A stretch of DNA of 64,000 bases from Utricularia gibba. Lineage: Eukaryota > Plantae > Magnoliophyta. The DNA is taken from contig CM007992.1 in assembly GCA_002189035.1 (NCBI GenBank), forward strand, positions 2,666,001 through 2,730,000. The letters run 5' to 3'. A model generated the notes under the pieces. It did not search any database. It had not been told where the DNA came from and worked only from the letters and a program-made list of their open reading frames with translations. Positions 38,223 through 58,721 of this stretch are shown here, piece by piece. A program made the translations under genes and the position numbers. Every line of letters begins with the position of its first letter. Position 1 is the first letter of the stretch.

Positions 38223-41200
38223 TGGTGAACTCGACGTGAAGCTCAAACTCATACACAAAACCTTCTCTTATCTCTCAACAACAACTTCTTAGATCAGCAT
38301 GGAAAATGCCTTCTCCCAACCACCTCCAACATTTGATGATAACTCAGCTAAGTATCCCAACTGATCCAAGAAAATGGCGAATTATTTTCGCACCTGCAAA
38401 CTCTGGGAGGTATTTGATCCTTCGCTTCAAGGGGACCTCTCCAAAGACACAACAAACGATTCTTGGACCAACAAGGTCAACAGGGCTCAGTCCCTGCTAG
38501 ATCAAGCGGTTGTGGATGATGCCTACGATCTCATCAACAACTGCTCCTCTCCACTTGAAGCATGGAACATTCTGGCAGAAACCTACGGCAAGAATCAACA
38601 AACACTTGTGCTCGAGAAAGCATTAAAGTGGCAAGTATTCGAAAATCTCAAAAATGATACCTGGTCAGAGCATCTCCACCTTCTCCGACTATCTCACTAA
38701 AGTGGTCAATGACTTGAAACAACTGGGAGAATCCCCAGACGACAACAGAATTCGCATGAAGATCATCAGCATAGTTCCCACTCAGTTCGCCTCAACCATT
38801 AATGCCTCCATCTTTGATGGAAGCATCCACACCATGACGCTCAAACAAGTCCTGGAAGGGCTCAAAGGCGTGGAAATGAGGCAACTCAACTATGAGCAAC
38901 AAAACCCACACAAAACTACACTCAAAGCTCAAGAAACTACTCTACCACTCACAGCCAAACATTCTGACCGGCTACAAACCAAATCTCCCCCATCAACTCT
39001 GACAGACCCAACAATCAGAACACATGTCCCTTTTGCAAACAAAAAAACCAGTTACCTCAAGCATGCTGGTGGCATCCGGATGCCGTTTGTTCCTACTGCA
39101 AATTACTAGGCCACACTGATAAGGTTTGTCCACTGAAGAAGTACCACCTCCTTGGAGGTAAAACTGCAGTAAGCATGGAAAAGCTCAATGCAAAGATGAA
39201 AGATGTATCACTCTCAGAACCCTCTAATAAACCGGTAGTTGAACTTTACTCAGAGTGTCACGACACCTTGCTCACAACCTTCACTGACCTACGAAAGCAA
39301 GGAACCTAGCTAGTAGACAATGGGTGTAGTCATCACCTGACTAATGATCTGATGCTCTTCACCTCATTCTCATTCCTACACCACAAATATATTCAAATTG
39401 CAGATGGAAAATGTATACCTGTCACTGGTCAAGGGGCAGTCTGTATTGAGACATCACTGAAGCTTCTAAAACTCAGTGACATTTACTACGTCCCAAACGC
39501 TTCTCACAATCTATTAAGCAGTGGACAGTTAGTCAAGAAAGGTTTTCGAGTGCATTTCGAAAACAATCAATGTCTCATCAAAGATACAAATGATAGCATC
39601 ATCTTGAGCTCTCCTATGGTGAACCACATCTTTCCACTCTTCTCACCTGAGCACCTTGAACATCCTCAAATCTGCTTAACTACCACAGAGGAATCAGAGC
39701 TATGGCACAAAAGGTTAGGGCACTATCACTATCAAGCCATCAATACCTTATAGCCGCAAAACATGGCGACTGGTATCCCCTTCCTTGCTCATCGAAAGAA
39801 TCAGTGCAGCATCTACCTCCAATGCAAACCCTCCTAGAAACCTTTTCCCACCAAGACCTCGATAGCTGCAACAAAATTGTGTGGTTACCTCAGATGTCTG
39901 TGGTCCTATGCACATCACTTCCAATTGTGGTAACCGTTACTATGTTCTCTTTATCGACGAGTTCTCTAAGTACATTTGGGTCTACCTACTCAAACGGAAA
40001 TCTGAGGTCACACACTACTTTACGGTATTTAAAGCAATGGCAGAAGCCCAGAGTAATAGCAGAATACTTACCCTGAGATCAAATAACGGTGGCGAATGCT
40101 CCTCTGCCGAACTGAAAAACTCTCTGCGAGACAAATGGCCTAGTGCACCAATTTTCAGCCCCCTACACCCCACGGCAAAACGGTATCAGAGAACGAAAAA
40201 ACCGTACCATAATGGATATGCCTCGGTGCCTCCTACATGAGAAGAATATGCCACTGAGATTTTGGGGAGAAGCAATCCAAACCTCGGTATATCTCCTGAA
40301 CCGGCTTCCCACCAAAGGCACAATGGATAGGAAATTCCCTTATGAACTTTGATTCAACCAAACACCTGACCTAGCACATCTCAAAATATTTGGATCGATT
40401 TGTTATATTCTCAAACCCCAAGAACTACAAGCCAAGTTGGATAAAAAGTCAGATACAGGCATTTTTCTAGGGTATTCCAACACAAGCAAGGCTTACCATG
40501 TCCTGAACCTTAACACCAATAGAGTGGAGATCACCAGAGAGGTCGTGGTTGACGAAACCAAAAACTTCGATTGGTCTGCTCTGCCTGCTACTCCTGCAGT
40601 GGACAGCCCCACCCACCACTTTATTCAACCTGTTTCTTAACCACGAAGAAGATTCAGACCATAATTCACTCATCAATGGACCCTCAAATTCATCAGAATA
40701 CTCAACTGCTACTTGTTTAGGTACCGAACAAACCTCACCTGCACCTTCTGCACCAACCGCGAATAGCATAGTGATGTAGTCTCCTTCACATGACTCTCTC
40801 AGCAGACTGCCTTACTCCACTGCTACTCCCCCCGTGAGGAAATCAGCTCAGCACCCCCTATGTCTGATGTCCCTCCTCCCATGGATCTACACTCGGAGGA
40901 CATGCTACAACCCTCAAAATCAGACTCCGAAACTACGTCATTAACTCCCAGAGATCATCCCTCCAGCTCCTCCGAGAACCCTAGTGATCACGAGGAAGAT
41001 ATTTCAGGTGTTCCTACACCCTCCGGTGTTATCCCAAGACTGCTCAAGGCAGTCACTCAGGACTACTTGGACAGTATATCCCACGACTACGAGTCCGACA
41101 ATAATCTGCCTAACCACTTTCAAAGCTCCAACCCTGGTGACAATGAAGATTATTTTAGTGACTCCGACATACCCTAGTACCAAAATACAAACTGCTCTCA

Positions 41201-42734
41201 GATATTGTAAGTTACAACCACCTAACCCTTCATGGCCAAAGCACTGCAAATATCATGAAGTTACTTGAGTGGAAAAAATCAATGGATGAATTAGATTCCA
41301 TCCAAGCTCACGATGTATGGGAAGTCGTTGATAAACCTGCAGGAGCCAAAGTATTGAGTCTAAAATGGCTACACAAAGAAAAGCTCAATGCCGACGGGAC
41401 TCACAACAGATATAAATCCTGTATAGTGGCCAAGGGGTACCTGCAACAAGCCGGCATCGACTACAATGAGACCTTCGCCCCTGTAGCACGCCTCGACACC
41501 ATCAAGCTATTAGTCGCACTCTCAGCCTGCAACAATTGGAAATTGCACCATTTGGACATCAAATGTGGTGACCTACCAGAAGACATATACGTCTACCCTC
41601 CTCCAGGCTACGAAATCACAGAAGGCAAGCACAAAATCTTGAAACTCAAGAAAGCACTCTATGGCCTAAAACAGGCCCCTAAGGAGTTGTATTCAACTAT
41701 ACTTCATAAAACTAGGATATATCAGAAGTAAAAATGACACGACACTATATGTCTTGGAGAACTCCTCAGGGAAAGTGATTATATCATTATATCTTGACGA
41801 TATCTTAATCACTGGTAGCAACACTGACCTGATCGAAGAACAAAATTCACTATTGAAATCCCGCTTTAAGCTAATAGACTTGGGACTCACCAGATACTTC
41901 CTCGGGATTGAGATACTGTAGGGAGACAACTACATCTTCATGAACCAAAAGAAATACATCGATGACCTGCTGTGCAAGTACTCACTGCACGGAGAGAAAG
42001 GCAGCAAAGTTCCCTTCTCACCAGAGGGAAAACACAAACTCAAAAATGCTGACAGCAAATATCCAAACCCATCAGAATTTCAACGCCTCATAGGAGCCCG
42101 TCTATACCTCACTGCTACTCGTCATGATATAACCTTTGCAACCTCATATCTATCGAGATACATGCATTCACCTGGCAACCTACACATGGATATAGCTAAG
42201 CAAGTGCTCAAGTACCTGAAGACTTCTTTTACGCTCGGTCTGTATTTTAAAACCGGCACCAAACCCTCTCTGCTAGGCTTTGTGGACGCCGACTTCGCTA
42301 GAGATGAAGATAACTGCAGCTCCACTATCGGGTACCTGTTTACACTAGGATCTACCACATTTGCCTGGAATTGCAAAAAAACAAAGCACCGTGGCTCAAT
42401 TCTCTACCAAGGCAGAGTACATTGCCAGTGCTGCAGCTGCCAACCACGCCCAATGGTTGATAAAAATCTGCAAAGATTTGCGGCTCAACATCAACAAACC
42501 TGTAATCCTTAAAATCGACAACAAATCAGCCATAAGTAAAGCCCAAAATCCCGTGATGTTCGGGCGCACTAAATACATCAAAGTCAAATATCATGTCCTT
42601 CGTGAGTATGTGAAGGAAGGCACTATCAAACTGGAGCACATACCTTCTGAAAATCAAGTTGTAGGCATCCTTACGAAATGTCTCTTTCCTGCCAACTTCT
42701 GCAGATTGCATGAATTACTAGGGTTAAGGAGGAA

Positions 42735-43116
42735 TGTTGGAGTGTGCTTATCCAATTGAGGATTCAGGTCGAACACCCAAGGCATCTGCCTCTACAAGCA
42801 ACAAGGCGCAGAATCCAGTCGCTACCCCACGAAGTCAAAGACCTGATCTATGTGGAATTTGGGGCTTATTGTGCTGGACAGGAATTTAGTTCTGAAGCCC
42901 ATAAACTGATCGTGCACACCGGCCCAAGTACTCAAGCTCTTAGCCCAAAGTCAAGTTGTACATAAAGACAAGACAACGCCTATAATTGAGACAACAAGTG
43001 ATCTATTTTTCAGCATAAATACCATAAAGTCAAGTTGCACATAAATACCAAGACAACGGCATACTAGAAAATCTTCTATGCTCTCAAATTCCTTCAATAT
43101 CTCCCAAATTCCTTCA
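42735..43116 (+). repeat. 3' LTR of the Copia element (382 bp)
   Basis: Direct repeat of 37850-38222, with roughly one difference per 10 bases in the stretches compared by eye. Confidence 0.95.
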
Positions 43117-43237: not shown

Positions 43238-45172
43238 ATGGCGCCACTCACAACCGCGTTGATTCCTGTCTCAGAAACTGGATGCGTGGATCTCAAGTCT
43301 GATGCTCGGCAACTCATTGCAACTGCTTTTTCGAAGAATCTCGCGTTTTCCTGTACTGGGTCTTCTTATTGGGAGCCTAAAAGGCGCAAGTGGTCCAATT
43401 TTGCTATCAAATATTCACCAGGGGCTCATGTTTCATTTGGTGATTTGATCGGTTTTTAGAGTTCTTTGGTGTCCCTGTCGTGTGTTTGGCTTCCCGCGTT
43501 ATCGTCATTGTGTTTCGCTTCTGTGCAGGAGTTGAATCTACTTCGGTTTATGATGTGCCGCTTCTTTCTTGTGAGCAGGTAATTTCATTTTTCTTCACTT
43601 TTGGATTTTGAATGGAATACGGAGAAACCAATCTGCTGTATGTGCATGTATAATAACTTGCCTGATTGGATCATAAGGCTTGGGGGTTGTACATCAATTG
43701 TGGGTTAGGCTCAAGGAGTTTTGGCTGTGAAATGTAGACTAGAAATTGGGGTGGAATATTCCAGTGTAGGTTGTATGCTGTAGCATCTTGTTACAACACA
43801 ATACCTTTTGTTTTGGTGAATGAAGTTGTTGCCCTTGGAAGCCATAATTTTAACAGTCGATGGTATTTTTGAATCATGGTAAATTTGTGTAAGTATACGC
43901 CCTTAATCATTAGTTATGCACGCATTAGCTTTTGGGCTTTATTCTTAATCTTCAGGCCATTGAAAGATTAAAAGCAGTACGTGAAAATTATGAGAGCAAG
44001 TACCAGTACTTGGCTATGTATTCAAGTGTTTTTGGGGGAATAACAACTGATCCATCAGCCATGGTTGTCCCCATGGATGACCACATGGTCCACAGAGGTC
44101 ATGGAGTCTTCGATACCGCTGCTATCTCCAATGGGTCAGTATATGAACGTTCCTGCACCTGTCTTCTAATAATAAACTTTGCAGTATGCTTCCTTGCTTA
44201 TGATCTGTTACTGGCTCAGTCATTTGACAAACGTGGTTTCTCGAATGCTTTTCTGTTGGTTGCTTTAAACTTATTTGGTTAATGTATCAAGAGAATGCTT
44301 ACCTTATTCTTTTATTCCAGTTATCTCTACGAATTGGATCAGCACCTCGACCGCTTTCTAACTTCAGCTGAAATGGCCAAAATAAAGCCCCCTTTGACAG
44401 ACAAACAATCAGAAAAATACTCATACAAACCGTAAGTGCCTCGAAGTGCCGAAATGGATCATTAAGATATTGGCTTTCTGCTGGAATTGGTGATTTCCAG
44501 CTATCTCCAGCCGGCTGCCACAGATCCTCTCTTTATGCTATAGTAATCCAAAGTAAGTCCACTTCCTCTGCCACGCAAAAGGGTGTCAAGGTGATAACTT
44601 CATCTATACCCTTGAAACCTCCCCAATTCGCCACCATGAAGAGTGTGAACTATCTCCCGAACGCACTCTCAATGATGGAGGCTGAAGAGAGTGATGCCTC
44701 CGCCGCAATTTGGTTAGACGAACATGGCTACATTGCCGAAGGGCCTAGTATGAATGTTGCATTTGTTACGAAGGAGAAGGAGCTGGTGATGCCGAAGTTC
44801 GACAAGATTCTGAGTGGCTGCACAGCCAAGAGAGTGTTAGTTCTCGCGGAGGCACTAGTGAAGGAGGGAAAACTTCAAGCAGTGAGAGTGCGGGATGTGA
44901 ATATGGAGGAAGGGAAGAATTGTGAGGAGATGATGCTCGTTGGCAGCGGAGTTCTTGTTCGTTCAGTTATTCAGTGGGACGATGAAGTCATTGGAAATGG
45001 TAAGATTTTCTTGTCCATTCAACAGTGATCATCCATTTGCTTCTGAGGTTCAGAAAGTATCACTTGCTTGACAGGGAAAGAAGGCTCCATTGCCTCTAGT
45101 CTTCTGAATCTTCTTCTGGGGGACATGCACTCCGGCCCGGAATCTGTACGAGTCCTTGTTCCATATGCTTAA
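43238..45172 (+). CDS. DAAT: Plastid D-amino-acid transaminase / aminodeoxychorismate-lyase-like class IV aminotransferase; exons 43238-43439, 43529-43578, 43956-44134, 44321-44999, 45075-45172; -1 frameshift at about 44388-44395 as written
   Basis: Motifs AMYSSVFGGITTDPSAMVVPMDDHMVHRGHGVFDTA, YLYELDQHLDRF, SLRYWLSAG, KSVNYLPNALSMMEA, IAEGPSMNVAF, KILSGCTAKRV and DMHSGPESVRVLVPY, with GT-AG introns. The exon 1 donor is the least certain. Confidence 0.92.
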
Positions 45173-45699: not shown

Positions 45700-46172
45700 C
45701 AATGTTTGTAGTTCCTGATTCATAGAAATTCACTTTCAGGGCAATCTTGTCCCAAGGAAGACTACCTTTCCTTCTGGGATGAAGGTATTGCCTCATTATG
45801 TCCATACCAAGGGGCTTAGGCTTGGGATATATTCAGACGCAGGGTAATCTAAATTCGACTGTGTTTGATATCAGGCTTCAAACTAGATAGCTTCAGTTGT
45901 GCATTTGGAATCTCTCACGCAGAGTGTATGAAACTGATACTCCTTGATGAAGCTTACTGTTCTTGCTGCGTTTTCTCTTCCTTTGGCAGAACTTACACCT
46001 GCAGCAAGACAATGCCAGGCTCACTTGGTCATGAAGAACAAGATGCAAGCACCTTCGCATCGTGGGTAAGGATCCTTGTTTTGCAAATTCTGTTATCGAT
46101 TGCTGTATTGTAGTTCGTGGTTTGAAACCGGAATGTCATCCCTAGATTTGATTGCAAGAATATCCACCCACA
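45700..46172 (+). pseudogene. Orphan alpha-galactosidase fragment (two exons, 45740-45843 and 45990-46065, with flanking intron)
   Basis: Encodes [35 protein letters not shown] and [25 protein letters not shown]. It is a direct copy of about 49061-49488, including intron sequence. Confidence 0.9.
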
Positions 46173-46178
46173 AGGTGA

Positions 46179-46964
46179 TCAACGACGACGGTTCAGAGAA
46201 ACCTTGACTCTTGTGCGACAGAGGGGGCATTTGTTCTTAGCTTGCAGCCATTTTTTGATGCATGCGGAATGAAACTGATGTTGGCAGTCCAGGATTCCGA
46301 TCATGCCGCCGTCGCAGAGGCCCTCCTGACAAACGACGCAGATGTTGGACTGCCCGTCTTCATCAATGGCTTCAATTTCCCAATTGTTCTTCATTGTCAT
46401 GCTCTCCATTAGTATCCTCTGATACCTCCTCAGTAACTTTTTTTGATGGTCTTCATGTGCAGGTTCATCCTCTTCGATCTCCTCCGCGAAGGCCGCGTCC
46501 TCCGTCTCGCTGCTCCTCTGGTTCGAACCAACCTCATGGCCCTCAACGATGAGTTTGTCCAGAACCTCCAGTTCTTCATCGGAGGAGATACTCTCACTAC
46601 GAGGAAACAGCACATAGCACCAAAAGCCTCTGAAACGTGGAACGAAGGGTGGAGCGTCGGGATTCAACCCCTTGAAAATCCATGGAACGACGGACTGTGT
46701 GAAACTTGATGGCACGTATGGAGGAGCGTGGATATTCATCGGGAAAGGAGCAGGCACGAATGGAGGGGCCAAGGGATCCAACCCGTAAGGAGCTTCGGAA
46801 ATCTGTGGAACCATGGGCTCCCTCAAACTTAGTGGCACGTATGGAGGAGCATGGATATTCATCGAGAAAGGCGCAGGCACGAGAGGAGCGGCCAGGGGAT
46901 CCATCGGAAAAACAAGTCGGCAAGAGGTGAGTCGTGTGAAAATTCCTCTGGCGAAAACAACCAT
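46179..46964 (-). CDS. Intronless RING-H2 E3 ubiquitin ligase-like protein (261 aa) with an N-terminal array of PAM2-like motifs
   Basis: C-terminal CVVC-x14-CQHQFHSAC-x10-CPLC (C3H2C3). N-terminal repeats MDPLAAPLVP, MNIHAPPYVP, LDPLAPPFVP, MNIHAPPYVP and LNPDAPPFVP, then an acidic linker. The ORF is fully open with a real ATG at 46964 (second Met at 46904). Confidence 0.85.
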   Translation of the reverse strand: MVVFARGIFTRLTSCRLVFPMDPLAAPLVPAPFSMNIHAPPYVPLSLREPMVPQISEAPYGLDPLAPPFVPAPFPMNIHAPPYVPSSFTQSVVPWIFKGLNPDAPPFVPRFRGFWCYVLFPRSESISSDEELEVLDKLIVEGHEVGSNQRSSETEDAAFAEEIEEDEPAHEDHQKKLLRRYQRILMESMTMKNNWEIEAIDEDGQSNICVVCQEGLCDGGMIGILDCQHQFHSACIKKWLQAKNKCPLCRTRVKVSLNRRR

Positions 46965-47851
46965 TTTTATAGGGATTCAGATGCCTCACTTCCATTGAAA
47001 TATGGAAACATTAGAATTAGTAATCAGATACAGATATTAATCTAAACTAGGAAATGTTGTCATATAACATAATATAATTTAAATATTATATAATATAATC
47101 ATGTTTTCATTAGTGCTAAATATAATCAGGTTTTCATTAAAATAAAAACTACTTCTTCATGATTTTATTAATTATAAATAATAAAAAAATAGAAAAAAAT
47201 AGAAAAAAAATCAATTCATCTGCCAAAATTACATATTTCAACTTCAAAGAAAAGAATACCATAATACACAAGTAATTAACAACGTCAATTTATCAACAAA
47301 ATAGATAAATAAATTATTTATTTATATTTAAAATAAATAATTAAATTTTTGTATGTTTTAACAAAAACATTAAATTCAAAATATTTTATATATTTTGTAA
47401 AATATGCATGTATTGTTAAACTAGTTTATTAAATATATATTATTATTAATATATAGATATTTAAATAATAAAAACTATCTACCAAGCAACGATTTAAGGT
47501 TATCTTAATTATAGTTCATACATGCTATATTTATTTTATTTTTTAATGTTATATTCATATTTAATATCATCAATTTAAAAATACAACTTATTATTTTAAA
47601 AATCAGAATATCTATAATTTCTCATGGTTGATACAGAAGATGTCTCAAATCTTTGGGTTAGACTTTTGGTGTAGAAGAGAAAAATATATAATTTTTAATT
47701 ATGTTTAAAAATATTTGTTACTAATTAATATAAATTTAGAGTAATAATTTTAAATCATATTAATAAAATACATACATTATATTATTGAATTATGATATTG
47801 TTTTGATGCATTTATATGTATTTATCTTCATCTTCTCCTTTGATCCTGGAG

Positions 47852-48083: not shown

Positions 48084-49382
48084 ATGGCTTCTAATGGACC
48101 ACTGATTGCAGTGCAGTGTGTACTCTTGGGGTTGATATATACCATTCACGTTTCTCAATTTTGTTTTCAATATTCTTACGGCTTACAAGAACTACTGTTT
48201 CGCCTTCTCTTTTGTTTTCTGTGTGTCCAACCAGTTGGGTACGGAGGATCTGCGAAGGGGTTCATCGCTTCTACTTCTTATGTTGATTGCATCAGCTGTT
48301 GTTGTTCATTCCCACGATGGAGTTTTGAGTAGGAGAAGTTTGTTGGCAAATGGGCTCGCGGCAACTCCTCAAATGGGGTGGGCACCTTTTTCTTATATTT
48401 TTTCTATTTGGGGTGAATTGTGTTCTGGGTTGTGCAGAATCATGACTGCGCGATGGTTTTTGTTACGTCGATGTACTTTTTGTTTGTTATCCATTTGTTG
48501 AAAATGATGTTTCTGGAAACTGTTTTCTGGTTTCTGCCACTTTTTGCTAGTGTTCCTCATCTTTCTGGCTTTGGAAATCATTTTTGTCCATTGCAAACTC
48601 TGTTCTCTTAATGTTATTGTGATCTTCTCGTTGAGGAAAGGATAATCTCTTCTTATTTTGCCTTTGCTGGGGTTTCATTTTTCAGGTGGAACAGTTGGAA
48701 TCATTTTGCGTGTCACGTTGACGAAAAGATGATCAGAGAAACAGGTTTGTGACATCTTCTGCAGCCTCTTGTATTCAAATCGTCTTTCGCAACAGGGGAA
48801 GTTCCCTTGCTATATCATTTTCATTCCTTGTTCTAGCACAACGATTTTGTTTTGGTCAGCGGATGCTTTGGTTTCTACTGGGCTTTCAAAGCTCGGTTAT
48901 GTCTACGTCAATATTGGTATGTTCTTAGAGTTTGGAAATTGTTTCCACATTTCCTTGTCATGAATGCTGGTATCTTTGTTCACAGATGACTGCTGGGCCC
49001 AGATTTTTCGTGATGACAAGGTTTGGTTCATTCGAATAATCGAACAACTGTGATATATGTCCAATGTTTTAGTTCCTGATTCATGGAAATTCACTCTCAG
49101 GGCAATCTTGTCCCAAGGAAGGCTACCTTTCCTTCTGGAATGAAGGCATTGGCTGATTATGTTCATAGCAAGGGGCTTAAGCTCGGGATACATTCCGACG
49201 CAGGGTAATCTTAATTCGACTATGTGTTTGATATCATGCAGAGTACGAAACTGATACTCCTTCATGAACCTTACTGTTCTTACCGTGTTTTCTTCTCCAT
49301 TGGCAGAACTTACACCTGCAGCAAGACAATGCCTGGCTCACTTGGACATGAAGAACAAAATGCAAGCACCTTCGCATCTTGG
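48084..49382 (+). CDS. AGAL1: Alpha-galactosidase (GH27, AGAL1-like), only the N-terminal part found; exons ending 48377, 48686-48744, 48860-48916, 48986-49020, 49101-49204, 49307-49382; start codon uncertain (48084 via a small upstream exon, or 48280)
   Basis: Signal-peptide-like stretch, then [60 protein letters not shown]...GNLVP...[16 protein letters not shown]. The following exon with the YLKYDNC nucleophile motif is not clearly present in the window. Confidence 0.88.
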
Positions 49383-49718
49383 GTAAGGATCCTTGTTTTG
49401 CAAATTCTGTTATCGATTGCTATATTGCAGTTTGTGGTTTGGAAAGAGGAATTTCACCCAAGATTTGATTGCAAGAATATCCACCCACAGAACTGACTCC
49501 CCTTCTGGCTCGTAGTTTGAATGAAACAGTAAGGGGTTAGTCATGAATTAAGGCATCTATGATGCAGGGATTCATTGAAATACAATTTAAGTTCAAGATA
49601 TCATACTAAAAGTCATGGTTTATTTAGACATTGGCAAATGAGCTAGTTTATGTTATGTAAGAGCAATCTGTAGATGAGTTGCTTAAATACCTCCTTTAGG
49701 TGCATGGAGCAAATTTAG

Positions 49719-53397: not shown

Positions 53398-56300
53398 CTA
53401 CGTTTTTTGTGCGTCCATCAGCTTAATCATCTCCACATTCCCTGTAAACATATGGTCAACATTTTCATGAAAAATTTTAAAGAGATGCCCATTTACCAAA
53501 AATCCTTTGTTTGATTCTCCATCAAATATCTCCACAGCATCATTTGGAAAAATTTCCTTCACAATAAAAGGTCCTATCCATCTTGATTTCAGCTTTCCAA
53601 GGTGCAATTTTAACCTGGATTAGAATAATAAGACTTTATGGCCAATCTCAAAATTTCTCCTGGAAATATGCACGTCATGATAACTCTTAGTCCGAGCTTT
53701 GAATAGTTTTGAGCTCCCGTACACATCATTTCTCAACTCCTCCGATTCTGAAAACTGAAGCTTCCTATGACTTGCACTGAGGTTCCTATCCAAATTCAAC
53801 TTCTTCACAACCACCAAGTTTTGTGCTCAAGAGCTGCTAGTAATCTACAAGGCTTCCCATAGACCAACCGAAATGGTGAGGTCCCAATGGGAGTCTTGTA
53901 TGCTGTTTGTATGGGCTAAAGTTCATCCTTTAACCTCATGCGCCTCCTTCCTGCTTGGGTTCACAAATTTCTCTAGAATTTGTTTGATTTCCCTGTTTGA
54001 GACTTCAGTTTGTCCATTGGTTTGTGGATGGTATGCCGTAGAAGACTTGTACCAAACATTAAAATGCTTCAAAACACTTCTTAAGGCCTGATTGTAAAAA
54101 TGTGTTCCCCTATCAATGATTAGGGCCTTAGGAGTTCCATATCTCGTGAAGATGTTGTTGCGCAAGAAATTAATCACAGTTTTTGCATCATCAGTTCATG
54201 TAACTGCCTCAATCCATTTGGACACGTAATCAACCGCAATCAAAGTGTAATTGTAACCTGCTGAAGTAGGAAATGGTCCAATAAAATCCATACCCCATAA
54301 ATCAAATAATTCACATACCAGGATTCCTTGTTGAGGCATTTCATTTCTGTTTGATAAATTTCCTACCCTTTGGCATGGTTCACAACCTTTGCAAAAGGCG
54401 TAACAATCTCTGAAAATGTGAGGCCAATAAAATACGCAGTATAGAATTTTTCTTGTTGTTCTATTCAGTCCATGATGGCCACCAAAAGGTTCTACATGAC
54501 AAGAATCAATGATTTTTGGAATTTCATTTTCATGAACACACCTTCGAATGACGCGACCATTGCATCTCTTTCATAAATATGGATAATCCCATATGTAGTA
54601 TTTGGCATCACTCTTCAGCTTGTTCCTCGCATGATAGTCCATTCTAGGTGGCATCACCCATGTTGAGACAAAGTTTGCAAGGTCAGTAAACCACGGTTCA
54701 CGTATATTAGTCTGAACTAAGAATAGCTGTTCATTTTGAAACATCTCAGTGATGATTCCATCTCCTTCACTTCCTTCAATTCTACTGAGATGATCAGCCA
54801 CAAGGTTCTCCCTTCCAAGCCTGTCCTTTATGCCAACATCAAATTCTTGAACGAGAAGGACCCATCTGATAAGTCTCAGTTTGGAATCCTTTATCTCCAT
54901 CAAGTGCTTCACCGTCGAATGATCAGTGTATATCACCACTTTGCTACCTAAAAGATAAGAACAAAATTTTTCCAAGAAAAAAATAACAACAAAAAATTCC
55001 CTTTCAGTGATGGTATAGTTTTTCTGGGCCTCATCCAAGGTTTTCGAAGCAAAAGAGATAACATGGTGCTTCCCTTCAATTTTTTGTCCCAAAACAACAT
55101 CCACAGCATGATTACTTGCATCACACATGATTCAAAATCATATTTCCAATCAAGTGGTTGCATCAAAAGTGCATTAATAACAGGATTTTTTAAAGAATTA
55201 AAATCTTGCTTACATGAATCATCAAAATTAAAGGCAATATCATTATGCAACAACCTACTAAGAGGCAAGGAAATTTTCGAAAAATTTTAATGAACCTCCT
55301 ATAATAACTAACATGGCCTAAAAATGATCGAATGCCTTTTACACCAATAGGATAAAGATGCTCAGACATAATCTCAATTTTTGCCTTATCTACTTCAATT
55401 CCTTTTTTAGAAATCACATGTCCTAAAAAAATTCCATGATCCATCATAAAATGACATTTTTCAGAATTTAAAACCAAATTCTTTTCCACACATTTCTTTA
55501 AAACCTGATCCAAATGGTCTAAGCATAACTCAAAATTTTCTTCATATACCGTAAAATCATCCATAAATATTTCAATAAAATCCTCACCAAAATTGGAGAA
55601 AATACTAGTCATACACCTTTGAAATGTGGCTTGGGCGTTACACAATCCGAAAGGCATCCTCCTATAAGCATAAGTTCCAAATGAACACGTGAAGGTTGTC
55701 TTATCTTGGTTCTGCCCTGAAATAGGAATCTGATTATATCCAAAATATACATCCAAAAAACAATAAAACAATTTTCCATCCAATTTTTCCAACATATGAT
55801 CAATAAAAGGCAAAGGATAATGGTCTTTCTTTGTTACTTCATTTAATTTTCGATAATCAATGCAAATACGCCAACCATTTTGCACCCTTTGTGGAACAAG
55901 CTCGCCTTTCTCATTTTCCACCACAGTCATCCTTGTCTTCTTTGGCACCACGTGAATGGGGCTCACCCATTCACTATCTCTGATAGAGTAAATAATCCTT
56001 GCGTCATGAAGTTTAACAATTTCTTTTCTTACCACCTCCATCATGTTCGGGTTGAGGCGTCTTTGAGGTTGGCGAACTAGTTTTGCACCATCCTCTAGAA
56101 AAATTCTATGCATGCATATGGATGGGAAGATCCCTTCAATGTCATCAAGCGTCCAACCTATTGCCTTCTTGTTTCTGTTTAGGACTTTGAGAAGTCGCGA
56201 CTCTTGGTCTAAGCTCAAACCAATGGAGATGATGATAGGATTCCTAAACTCTGCGTCAAGAAAAACATATTTTAAATGATTAGGCAATGGCTTCAGTTCA

Positions 56301-58721
56301 GCTAACCTCTCTTCCTGAGTCTTGGCTTGCACCATATTTAATTGCTTGAATTTTTCTTCAGCTTCAAATTTTGTAAATAAAGATTTTCGTGAGCCTCTTG
56401 TTTTTCTTGAATTTCTTTCTTCAAGTGCTCCTCAATGAGTCCATCCATGACATTCACAACACACATGCTCTCAAAATTAATGGGATAATTCTTCACATTC
56501 TTCATGTCTAGTGTGATTTTTTCTTCATCAAAAGAAAGCTCAATGGTCCCCATTTTCACATTGATGATAGTATTTGAAGTGCTCAAGAATGATCTCCCCG
56601 AGATAATTGTTGTGTCCTTTGATCCTCCAGTGGGCATGTTCACCAAATAAAAATCAGCTGGAAACAGAAGATGCTTAATTTTCACCAAAACATCCTCCAC
56701 CAAACCTTTGGGAGAAATCACTCTCCTATCCGCCAGCTCAATTTGCACACCTGATGGTTGCAGAGGTCCCAACCTAAGTGCCTCATAAACAGAATTCGAC
56801 ATGACATTTATAGAAGCTCACAGGTCTGCCATAGCTCTCCTGATCCACAATTCTCCTATTTTGCATTGTATAAAAAACGTACCCGGATCCTTATGCTTTT
56901 TGGGTAGGTTCCATGTTAAAAGTTCTAAGCAGCTTTCACTCAACTTCACATTGCCTTTCTCCTTCAATTTGGGCTTAGACATACATAGCTGCTTCAAATA
57001 TTTAACACTCTTTGACACAAGATCAATATACTCCAAGAGGGTTAAATTCAATTGGGTGTTTCTCTATGCTTTCAGCATTTTTTCCTTCTCAGTTTGCTCT
57101 TCTTTCAGCTTCAGCCTTCCTAGAAAAGGAGGCTGGGTCACCTTCACCGTGACAGGTTCTAGAAGTAATTCAAATTCGTCCTCACTTTGTACAACAACTT
57201 CAACTCTTCTGTCTCATTCTCCTTAGTCTTAATCTGCACTAGTTCTCGTCCAGACTTCTCTTTTCCACTCCTAAGTGTCATGGCACTGATGTTCGGCCCT
57301 CCACTGGAATTTGGATTTGGCTTGGGTTGAGATGGTAAGCTCCCTTTCTATTTCAGGTCTCCTAGCTCTAATGCCAACTGACTCACTTGGACCTCCAAAT
57401 TCCGGATGGCTTGTTGATTTTCAATTTGATTTTTGATTGATTGCGCAATGAATATCTTCAGCATTTCTTCCAAAGAATTTCTAAAATTCCATCCAGCATT
57501 GCCTTGATTTGAGGCTTGAAATGGCTGCTGGTTCTGTTGATTTTTCCTTCGAAATGGAGGCGCCTGGTAAGATCTTTGCTCCAACGAAAATTTTGCTGCC
57601 CCATGGTTGAGCTCTCCCCTTTGTAAGAATTTGCATTGTTGCTCCAACAAAAATTTGGATGATCCCTCCAGCCTAGATTGTAAGTATTTGTGTATGGATC
57701 ATATTTCTTTCTTTGCTGAGATTTCAAGTATCCCATAGTTTTGACATGCTCCTCTTTAAACAAATCTAGGCACTTGTCCACAACATGCCCTACTCTGTGA
57801 TAGTTCTCGCATGGCATGTTCTTGGTCTGGAATAAGAACAACTCCTTCATCATTTTAGATATAGCAGCAATATTTTTCGTGAGTTCAATCTCTGAAACCC
57901 TGGGCTTGCTCTCCACTTCATACACCCTCTTGTTTGAGGCTTGCTTCCTAATAATATGTCTCGAATGCTCAGCTAACTCCTCAAGCAAGGAAAGAGCTTC
58001 TGTTAGTGTTTTTTTCCTTAAAAATCCTCTCGCTGCCGAATCTATCATGGCTCGATCATTGCATAATAATCCATCATAGAAATATTTGACCAAAACATTG
58101 ATCTAAAAACCATGGTGTGGGAAGGAACCCAAAAGATGGTTGAATCTTTCCCAATATTCGTGCAATGATTCTCCACTCATTTGTTCAACATCACTAATTT
58201 CTTTTCTGATTCCTTTAGCCTTGGAAGCTGGAAAATATTTGCTCAAAAACACTTTCTTCATTCCAACTCAATCAGTTATGCTTGCAGGCCTTAGTGAGTT
58301 GAACTACCTTTTGGCTCCTCCTTCTAAAGTAAATTGGAAGGCTCTCAAACAGATTGAATCTTCAGTCATTCCAACTCCCTTGAAGGATGTGCATATCGGT
58401 GTCACATCATCTAGATGCTCATAGGGGTTCTCTCCAATTTTTTCATAGAACTTTGATAAAAAATTGATCATTCGCTGGTTTCAGCTCGTTTGCTCCATCC
58501 TCTGGAAATCTGATGCATAGACCCCTGTAAGTGTGATCAATGGCATCTAATTCATTCAAGGTCTTCTCAAGTTCAGCCATTCTAAAATTGTTGTTGGTCT
58601 CGGGTGGGAGCTGCCTCAATCTGCTTGCTTCCCTAACTCTGACCCTGTTCTTGCTGATAGTTCTTTCAATTTCTGGGAAGAAAGTGAGATTACTTGCACC
58701 AGAAGAATGTAAATGCATCAA
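53398..58721 (-). pseudogene. gag-pol polyprotein of the Athila-like element, multiple stops and frameshifts
   Basis: ORF-track fragments with gag, aspartic protease, RT (381-aa piece 56335-55190), RNase H and integrase motifs in Ty3/gypsy order. Confidence 0.92.

Follow-up and report, generated by a model that had tools for sequence, protein, structure and literature searches.

PAM2 motifs follow the consensus L-N-x-x-A-x-x-F-x-P. In animals, the RING E3 ligase MKRN1 carries a PAM2 motif through which it binds the MLLE domain of PABPC1, a poly(A)-binding protein, and it ubiquitylates PABPC1 and RPS10 in vitro (PMC6805484). In the fungus Ustilago maydis, Upa1 has both PAM2 and PAM2-like motifs as well as a C-terminal RING that was dispensable in the reported assays (PMC4466420), and Upa2 is presented in the title of its report as a multi-PAM2 protein (10.1101/455378). 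Both elements considered here, the pairing of PAM2 with a RING and the multiplication of PAM2 motifs, therefore have precedents outside plants. A further variation is found in eRF3/GSPT1, in which two overlapping PAM2 sites share Phe76 and bind MLLE with a 1:1 stoichiometry; its PAM2-C site (Phe76, Asn79-Val80-His81-Ala82, Phe85) does without the usual Leu and binds MLLE at ~3 µM (PMC2854688). The described plant PAM2 proteins that bind the MLLE domain of PABP have been grouped into CID classes A-D, comprising ERD15, the ataxin-2-like CID3/4, the CUE/SMR proteins CID5-7 and the RRM proteins CID8-13; CID3 and CID4 contain two tandem PAM2 reiterations, and a RING occurs in none of the four classes (PMC4574140). 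Our full-text literature searches found no plant protein that joins PAM2 to a RING-H2 finger, in agreement with the first-pass annotation of this DNA, which knew of no described plant protein with such an architecture.

Here we describe a gene from Utricularia gibba whose product appears to make this combination. It lies in a stretch of 64,000 nucleotides, the whole of which we analysed and which we refer to as the window; all coordinates are positions in it. The reading we prefer, with a probability of roughly 0.4, is that the gene encodes a lineage-restricted, single-exon ligase of the MBR / Arkadia-RNF38 type with a duplicated PAM2 array, which would dock on PABP and ubiquitinate it or its neighbours. 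RING ligases guided by PAM2 have already been described from animals and fungi; what is particular to this locus, judged from its sequence, is that PAM2 and RING are paired in a plant RING-H2 protein with a duplicated array. The first-pass annotation had read the gene as a RING-H2 ligase with five tandem PAM2-like motifs that could bind several PABP molecules. The architecture stands, but a single motif passes the Pfam threshold on its own, and the principle of a PAM2-guided RING had already been described outside plants. The parts of the gene are as follows.

46179-46964, minus strand: uninterrupted single-exon open reading frame of 261 codons plus stop
46179-46181, minus strand: its stop codon, read from the sequence
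46965-46971, minus strand: TATAAAA heptamer, directly abutting the first ATG
46782-46904, minus strand: repeat unit 1, residues 21-61, with motifs 1 and 2 (self-comparison and blastn)
46668-46781, minus strand: repeat unit 2, residues 62-99, with motifs 3 and 4 (self-comparison and blastn)
46875-46904, minus strand: motif 1, MDPLAAPLVP, from residue 21; Met for Leu, Asp for Asn and Leu for Phe
46833-46862, minus strand: motif 2, MNIHAPPYVP, from residue 35; Met for Leu and Tyr for Phe
46752-46781, minus strand: motif 3, LDPLAPPFVP, from residue 62; Asp for Asn
46710-46739, minus strand: motif 4, MNIHAPPYVP, from residue 76; Met for Leu and Tyr for Phe
46638-46667, minus strand: motif 5, LNPDAPPFVP, from residue 100; no deviation from the consensus
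46632-46673, minus strand: canonical PAM2 by Pfam PF07145, residues 98-111, KGLNPDAPPFVPRF, which contains the core of motif 5
46350-46607, minus strand: acidic linker rich in Glu, Asp and Ser, residues 120-205, defined by composition
46218-46340, minus strand: RING-H2 finger (C3H2C3), residues 209-249, defined by pattern and Pfam and followed by Arg250

When the reading frame, the motifs, the repeat and the RING were re-derived, every coordinate of the first-pass annotation proved correct, as did its description of the gene as intronless. The open reading frame forms an island of 50% GC in flanks of 16-35% GC. Were the TATAAAA heptamer a TATA box, transcription would be initiated downstream of it, and Met21 (46904), the first residue of motif 1, would be the start of translation. 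Two further frames are open over the repeat, one of 132 residues at 46597-46995 on the minus strand and one of 75 residues at 46703-46927 on the plus strand; both look like by-products of a GC-rich, stop-poor repeat and not like overlapping genes. As to the origin of the gene, a retrocopy seems unlikely, since the stop codon is not followed by a poly(A) tract; capture by a transposon was considered as well, but terminal repeats around the gene were not found.

The N-terminal half is organized by an internal repeat. The stretches 46676-46780 and 46799-46903, offset by 123 nucleotides, share 83% identity, and a blastn self-comparison recovered the same repeat (E 1.8e-25), which Tandem Repeats Finder missed. 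The two units encode 41 and 38 residues and are followed by a partial third that holds motif 5, so that the earlier description of a unit of about 120 bp in about 2.3 copies holds. The five motifs are present exactly as they had been quoted; because they arose by duplication, they do not represent independent events. Scanned as a whole, the protein scores 23.3 bits against the Pfam PAM2 profile (PF07145), above the gathering cutoff of 20, and this profile scan had been named in the first-pass annotation as a way of checking its proposal. When the motifs were scanned individually as 20-residue peptides, motif 5 alone matched PF07145 (28.4 bits, E 1.1e-6), and motifs 1-4 gave no match; the earlier caveat that the last motif fits best is thus borne out, motif 5 being the one canonical copy. 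The core residues Leu3, Ala7, Phe10 and Pro12 are all present in motifs 5 and 3. Motifs 2 and 4 have Met3 and Tyr10 instead, and motif 1 has Met3 and Leu10.

At the other end of the protein is a complete RING-H2 finger, as had been claimed, with the pattern C-x2-C-x14-C-x-H-x2-H-x2-C-x10-C-x2-C. All eight zinc ligands (C209, C212, C227, H229, H232, C235, C246 and C249) stand at canonical spacing, and the domain is recognized by Pfam as zf-RING_2 (E 3.7e-12) and zf-rbx1 (E 1.2e-10). Ile208, Trp239 and Pro247 are invariant in an alignment with seven relatives, and Arg250 aligns with the Arg that follows the last Cys of RNF38 ('CPICRAD'). The predicted E2-contact residues and the Arg after the last Cys are thus present as in active monomeric RINGs. 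A sequence search of the PDB placed RNF38, ARK2C/RNF165, Arkadia and RLIM nearest among solved structures (E ~1e-11 to 1e-10), and its sequence places the RING with plant ligases of the MBR / Arkadia-RNF38 type. AlphaFold2, run on an alignment of eight sequences, gave a mean pLDDT of 40 and was uninformative even for the RING. The acidic linker that had been noted between the repeats and the RING is also present, with 18 Glu and 7 Asp in residues 120-205; part of it aligned opposite an acidic stretch before the RING of relatives from the Lamiales, with hardly any residues conserved.

Taken together with the described systems, these features suggest how such a protein may act. A disordered, proline-rich N-terminus was expanded by tandem duplication of the 123-nucleotide unit, giving an array of one canonical PAM2 (LNPDAPPFVP), one near-canonical copy (LDPLAPPFVP) and three degenerate ones. 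At least the canonical motif would dock in the MLLE domain of a cytoplasmic poly(A)-binding protein, the weaker motifs beside it may increase local affinity through rebinding, in the manner of eRF3's overlapping pair, and the C-terminal RING would recruit a charged E2 and ubiquitinate PABP or its neighbours on the poly(A) tail. This, in our view the most likely mechanism, would follow the logic of animal MKRN1, in which PABP docking is followed by ubiquitination of nearby proteins. The two proteins are, however, non-homologous outside the RING fold: in MKRN1 a C3HC4 RING is joined by C3H zinc fingers and by a single PAM2 that departs from the consensus, whereas the U. gibba protein lacks C3H fingers and combines an MBR/Arkadia-type RING-H2 with an array of repeats in which one PAM2 follows the consensus. 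We therefore rejected membership of the Makorin family, since no zf-CCCH finger, of the kind that flanks the C3HC4 RING in that family, was matched even at E values as high as 10, and the RING here is an H2 one. Membership of CID classes A-D was likewise rejected, the PAE1/acidic region, Lsm/LsmAD, CUE/SMR and two RRMs that mark them all being missing from the Pfam scan. Upa1 and Upa2 are very large fungal proteins of endosomal mRNA transport, with FYVE and ankyrin domains, and have no sequence relationship to the U. gibba protein.

The comparison with eRF3 is closer at the level of the motifs. Motifs 2 and 4, which read F-x-M-N-I-H-A-P-P-Y, have the same spacing as eRF3 PAM2-C with Tyr in place of Phe, and the arrangement L-D-P-L-A-P-P-F-V-P followed by F-x-M-N-I-H-A-P-P-Y-V-P gives an eRF3-like pair per unit. 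In eRF3 the sites overlap and sit on a GTPase, whereas here they are four residues apart on a RING protein, and each repeat unit looks like a pulled-apart eRF3 pair. By this analogy, adjacent motifs, whose starts lie 14 residues apart, probably cannot hold two MLLE domains at once and would instead bind 1:1 as in eRF3. Measured from start to start, 38-41 residues separate the two pairs and motif 5, a spacing from which we infer room for no more than about three MLLE domains. Simultaneous binding of several PABPs is speculation, because only one motif passes Pfam alone. The repeats were also considered as WW-domain (PPxY) or COP1 VP-motif ligands, and both readings were rejected on grounds of misfitting spacing or acidic context.

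The relatives of the protein are defined by its RING. An exhaustive phmmer search against 1.84 billion representative sequences gave 15,670 RING matches, in which the top rows (one of them at E 5e-56) were discarded as orthologues; these are multi-RING proteins whose score is the sum of several RINGs. Among the matches listed, the best true relatives are small Lamiales proteins of about 205-292 residues, encoded by Buddleja, Paulownia and Sesamum; MBR2 or MBR2-like is the name given to several, and others are annotated only as hypothetical. Their RINGs are 52-61% identical to the one described here and have in common with it the signature C-x-V-C-Q-[DE]-x-L-C ... M-I-G-x-L-D-C-x-H-x-[YF]-H ... 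C-I-K-x-W-L-Q-x-K-N-x-C-P-L-C, of which the C-Q-[DE]-x-L-C part is unusual. All five relatives whose loci were inspected are single-exon genes with unrelated neighbourhoods; none of these five Lamiales loci has alpha-galactosidase or aminotransferase neighbours such as flank the U. gibba gene, and no orthologous locus was found. Thus MBR1/MBR2-type RING-H2 ligases and the Lamiales relatives share with the U. gibba protein the RING, the single exon and the acidic stretch before the RING. A GGLSEE motif before the RING is kept in all seven aligned relatives (GGLSEEVI..LKTRN) and is replaced by YQRILMESMTMKNN in the U. gibba protein, and PAM2, present in U. gibba, was absent from the closest RING relatives in Pfam.

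Clear homology begins only at about residue 200; with two of the relatives, tblastn carries it back to residue 153. In their N-terminal halves, the members of the family are all rich in Pro, Tyr and Phe and poorly conserved. None of the best 150 of the 15,670 phmmer matches shares the N-terminus; word-indexed homologue searches with the whole protein, with the N-terminal region and with the N-terminal piece alone returned nothing; metagenome scans with one DNA pattern and one protein were blank; and a PDB sequence search with the N-terminus gave chance matches only (E ~1). Because the N-terminus is common to no relative and the closest RING relatives are without PAM2, no cross-species conservation supports function, and the array therefore looks lineage-specific, an innovation, as far as these comparisons suggest, within a fast-evolving family of intronless RING genes.

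The gene sits in a rearranged, transposon-rich patch among gene fragments, the parts of which are given below.

38374-42759, plus strand: broken Copia remnants (gag, Pol_BBD and RVT_2, by domain matches)
43929-45028, plus strand: 3' exons of a class IV aminotransferase (Aminotran_4, E 5.9e-33), shortly upstream of the galactosidase fragment
45700-46172, plus strand: alpha-galactosidase fragment of 473 bp, exons 4-5 (GH27, Melibiase_2), 82% identical to 49062-49489
about 47.0-48.1 kb: AT-rich sequence
about 48280-49372, plus strand: alpha-galactosidase exons 1-5, a run to which the copied region 49062-49489 belongs; the duplicated piece lies 3.3 kb upstream
54571-56335, minus strand: broken Gypsy remnants (RVT_1 and RT_RNaseH, by domain matches)

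The galactosidase fragment ends at a rearrangement breakpoint 6 nucleotides beyond the stop codon of the RING gene, and any 3' UTR of that gene would therefore run antisense through the fragment. Both galactosidase pieces look like truncated gene fragments, because simple peptide patterns, run over the whole window, matched nothing from exon 6 onward. The rearranged surroundings and the antisense course of a 3' UTR lower our confidence that this copy of the gene is well regulated.

These surroundings also bear on a different account of the locus, in which the gene would be a young duplicate heading to decay, its frame open because the copy is recent, with no meaningful expression or selection and with a PAM2 likeness that has no cellular consequence. 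We regard this as unlikely, though with a real chance of being correct. It would sit well with the patchwork locus, with a galactosidase fragment so close to the stop codon and devoid of later exons, and with the flanking Copia and Gypsy remnants; the exact protein, translated from any of five possible starts, is moreover absent from a collection of 15 billion annotated proteins. Transcript support for the gene is thin and was drawn from sampled sequence words, whose matches to runs guessed to be RNA carry no strand and do not separate paralogues. Of the sampled words of 46100-47050, 53% occur in one small run of this guessed type, as do 60% of those of the PAM2 half; a second contains 22% of the words of the wider stretch, from part of the 3' half, but not one from the PAM2 half. 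In DNA runs from the same organism the share is 30-70%. Most of the RNA-guessed runs contain no sampled words, including two others from the study of the first run and three further runs labelled with the same species, which favours decay, but parts of the reading frame do occur in one to two such runs. The frame itself argues against decay: all 261 codons are open although the repeat units differ by 17-24%, and a simulated neutral reading frame at 0.11-0.13 substitutions per site, which is half of the between-unit synonymous distance, stayed free of stops only 5-8% of the time. The zinc ligands of the RING and the invariant residues of the family are likewise all intact, and changes inside the motifs are mostly synonymous. 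Between units 1 and 2, the block of 24 codons that holds the motif pair shows 4 synonymous and 4 non-synonymous changes (pS 0.218, pN 0.075), in contrast to the adjacent spacer (pS 0.36, pN 0.40), and motif 3 differs from motif 5 with pS 0.67 and pN 0.17. In Fisher tests on these counts, which rest on 10-24 codons, the p value was 0.10 for the motif block, 0.03 for motif 3 compared with motif 5, and 0.004 when non-synonymous changes in the motif block were set against those in the spacer. The mostly synonymous changes between units within the motifs, and not within the spacers, are weak evidence that motif residues have been kept.

A working ligase might also carry repeats that serve as a disordered spacer or bind another ligand, such as an SH3-type PxxP partner (PPFVPR would fit PxxPxR), with the match to PAM2 a coincidence of composition. 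The N-termini of the Lamiales relatives, also rich in Pro, Tyr and Phe and free of any PAM2 match, are in line with such a coincidence, as is the absence of a key residue from four of the five motifs. A motif of 10 residues can, in addition, arise by chance: the strict PAM2 core occurs once elsewhere in the six-frame translation of the window, at 57271-57300, which makes the core alone weak evidence. Motif 5, however, fits the full profile and not merely the core, at 28.4 bits, and when the N-terminus was shuffled with its composition preserved, the strict core came up in only 0.08-0.15% of cases, so that it is not just a product of proline-richness. The positions kept among the copies are moreover those of PAM2 (a hydrophobic residue 3, Ala7, an aromatic residue 10 and Pro12), and a language-model feature search with residues 15-125 ranked a PAM2 cluster first, at a low score of 0.51 that we treat as only a lead. 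On balance we consider coincidence improbable, more so than decay. That the frame is no gene, being either a chance open reading frame or an exon of a larger spliced gene misread as complete, seems to us very improbable. The first 20 residues do lack a counterpart in the aligned relatives, but a chance frame would hardly end in a complete RING-H2 (E 3.7e-12) at the same C-terminal position as in those relatives, of which the five inspected are all single-exon and of similar size, nor would it be expected to form a 50% GC island in flanks of 16-35%.

Should the PAM2-directed ligase that we prefer be real and its motifs bind MLLE, it would be, as far as our literature searches reach, the first plant ubiquitin ligase to be aimed at poly(A)-binding protein through PAM2 docking, and would provide a handle on the ubiquitin control of PABP and of mRNA translation or stability in plants. 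It would also document the birth of a short linear motif and its amplification by tandem duplication within a young gene family, and the one strong motif and its graded weaker neighbours would offer a natural series for measuring which PAM2 positions matter. A bolder extension, which we hold to be doubtful, less probable than decay and yet a little more so than coincidence, is that the Lamiales or a carnivorous-plant lineage has turned an ordinary RING-H2 ligase's disordered N-terminus into a multivalent PAM2 array with eRF3-like pairs. The result would be a plant-specific family of E3 ligases able to sense how densely PABP occupies poly(A) tails and to ubiquitinate PABP or ribosomal neighbours. 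As a convergent counterpart of animal MKRN1, it would have evolved independently, and it would still be expanding and partly decaying. If the motifs do not bind MLLE, the locus would be one more fast-evolving orphan RING gene.

Buddleja, Paulownia and Sesamum contain several dispersed, single-exon genes for small RING-H2 proteins, at least four of them in Buddleja, which share the RING signature C-Q-D-D-L-C-Q-E together with GGLSEE. These genes form an intronless, fast-evolving subfamily in the Lamiales.
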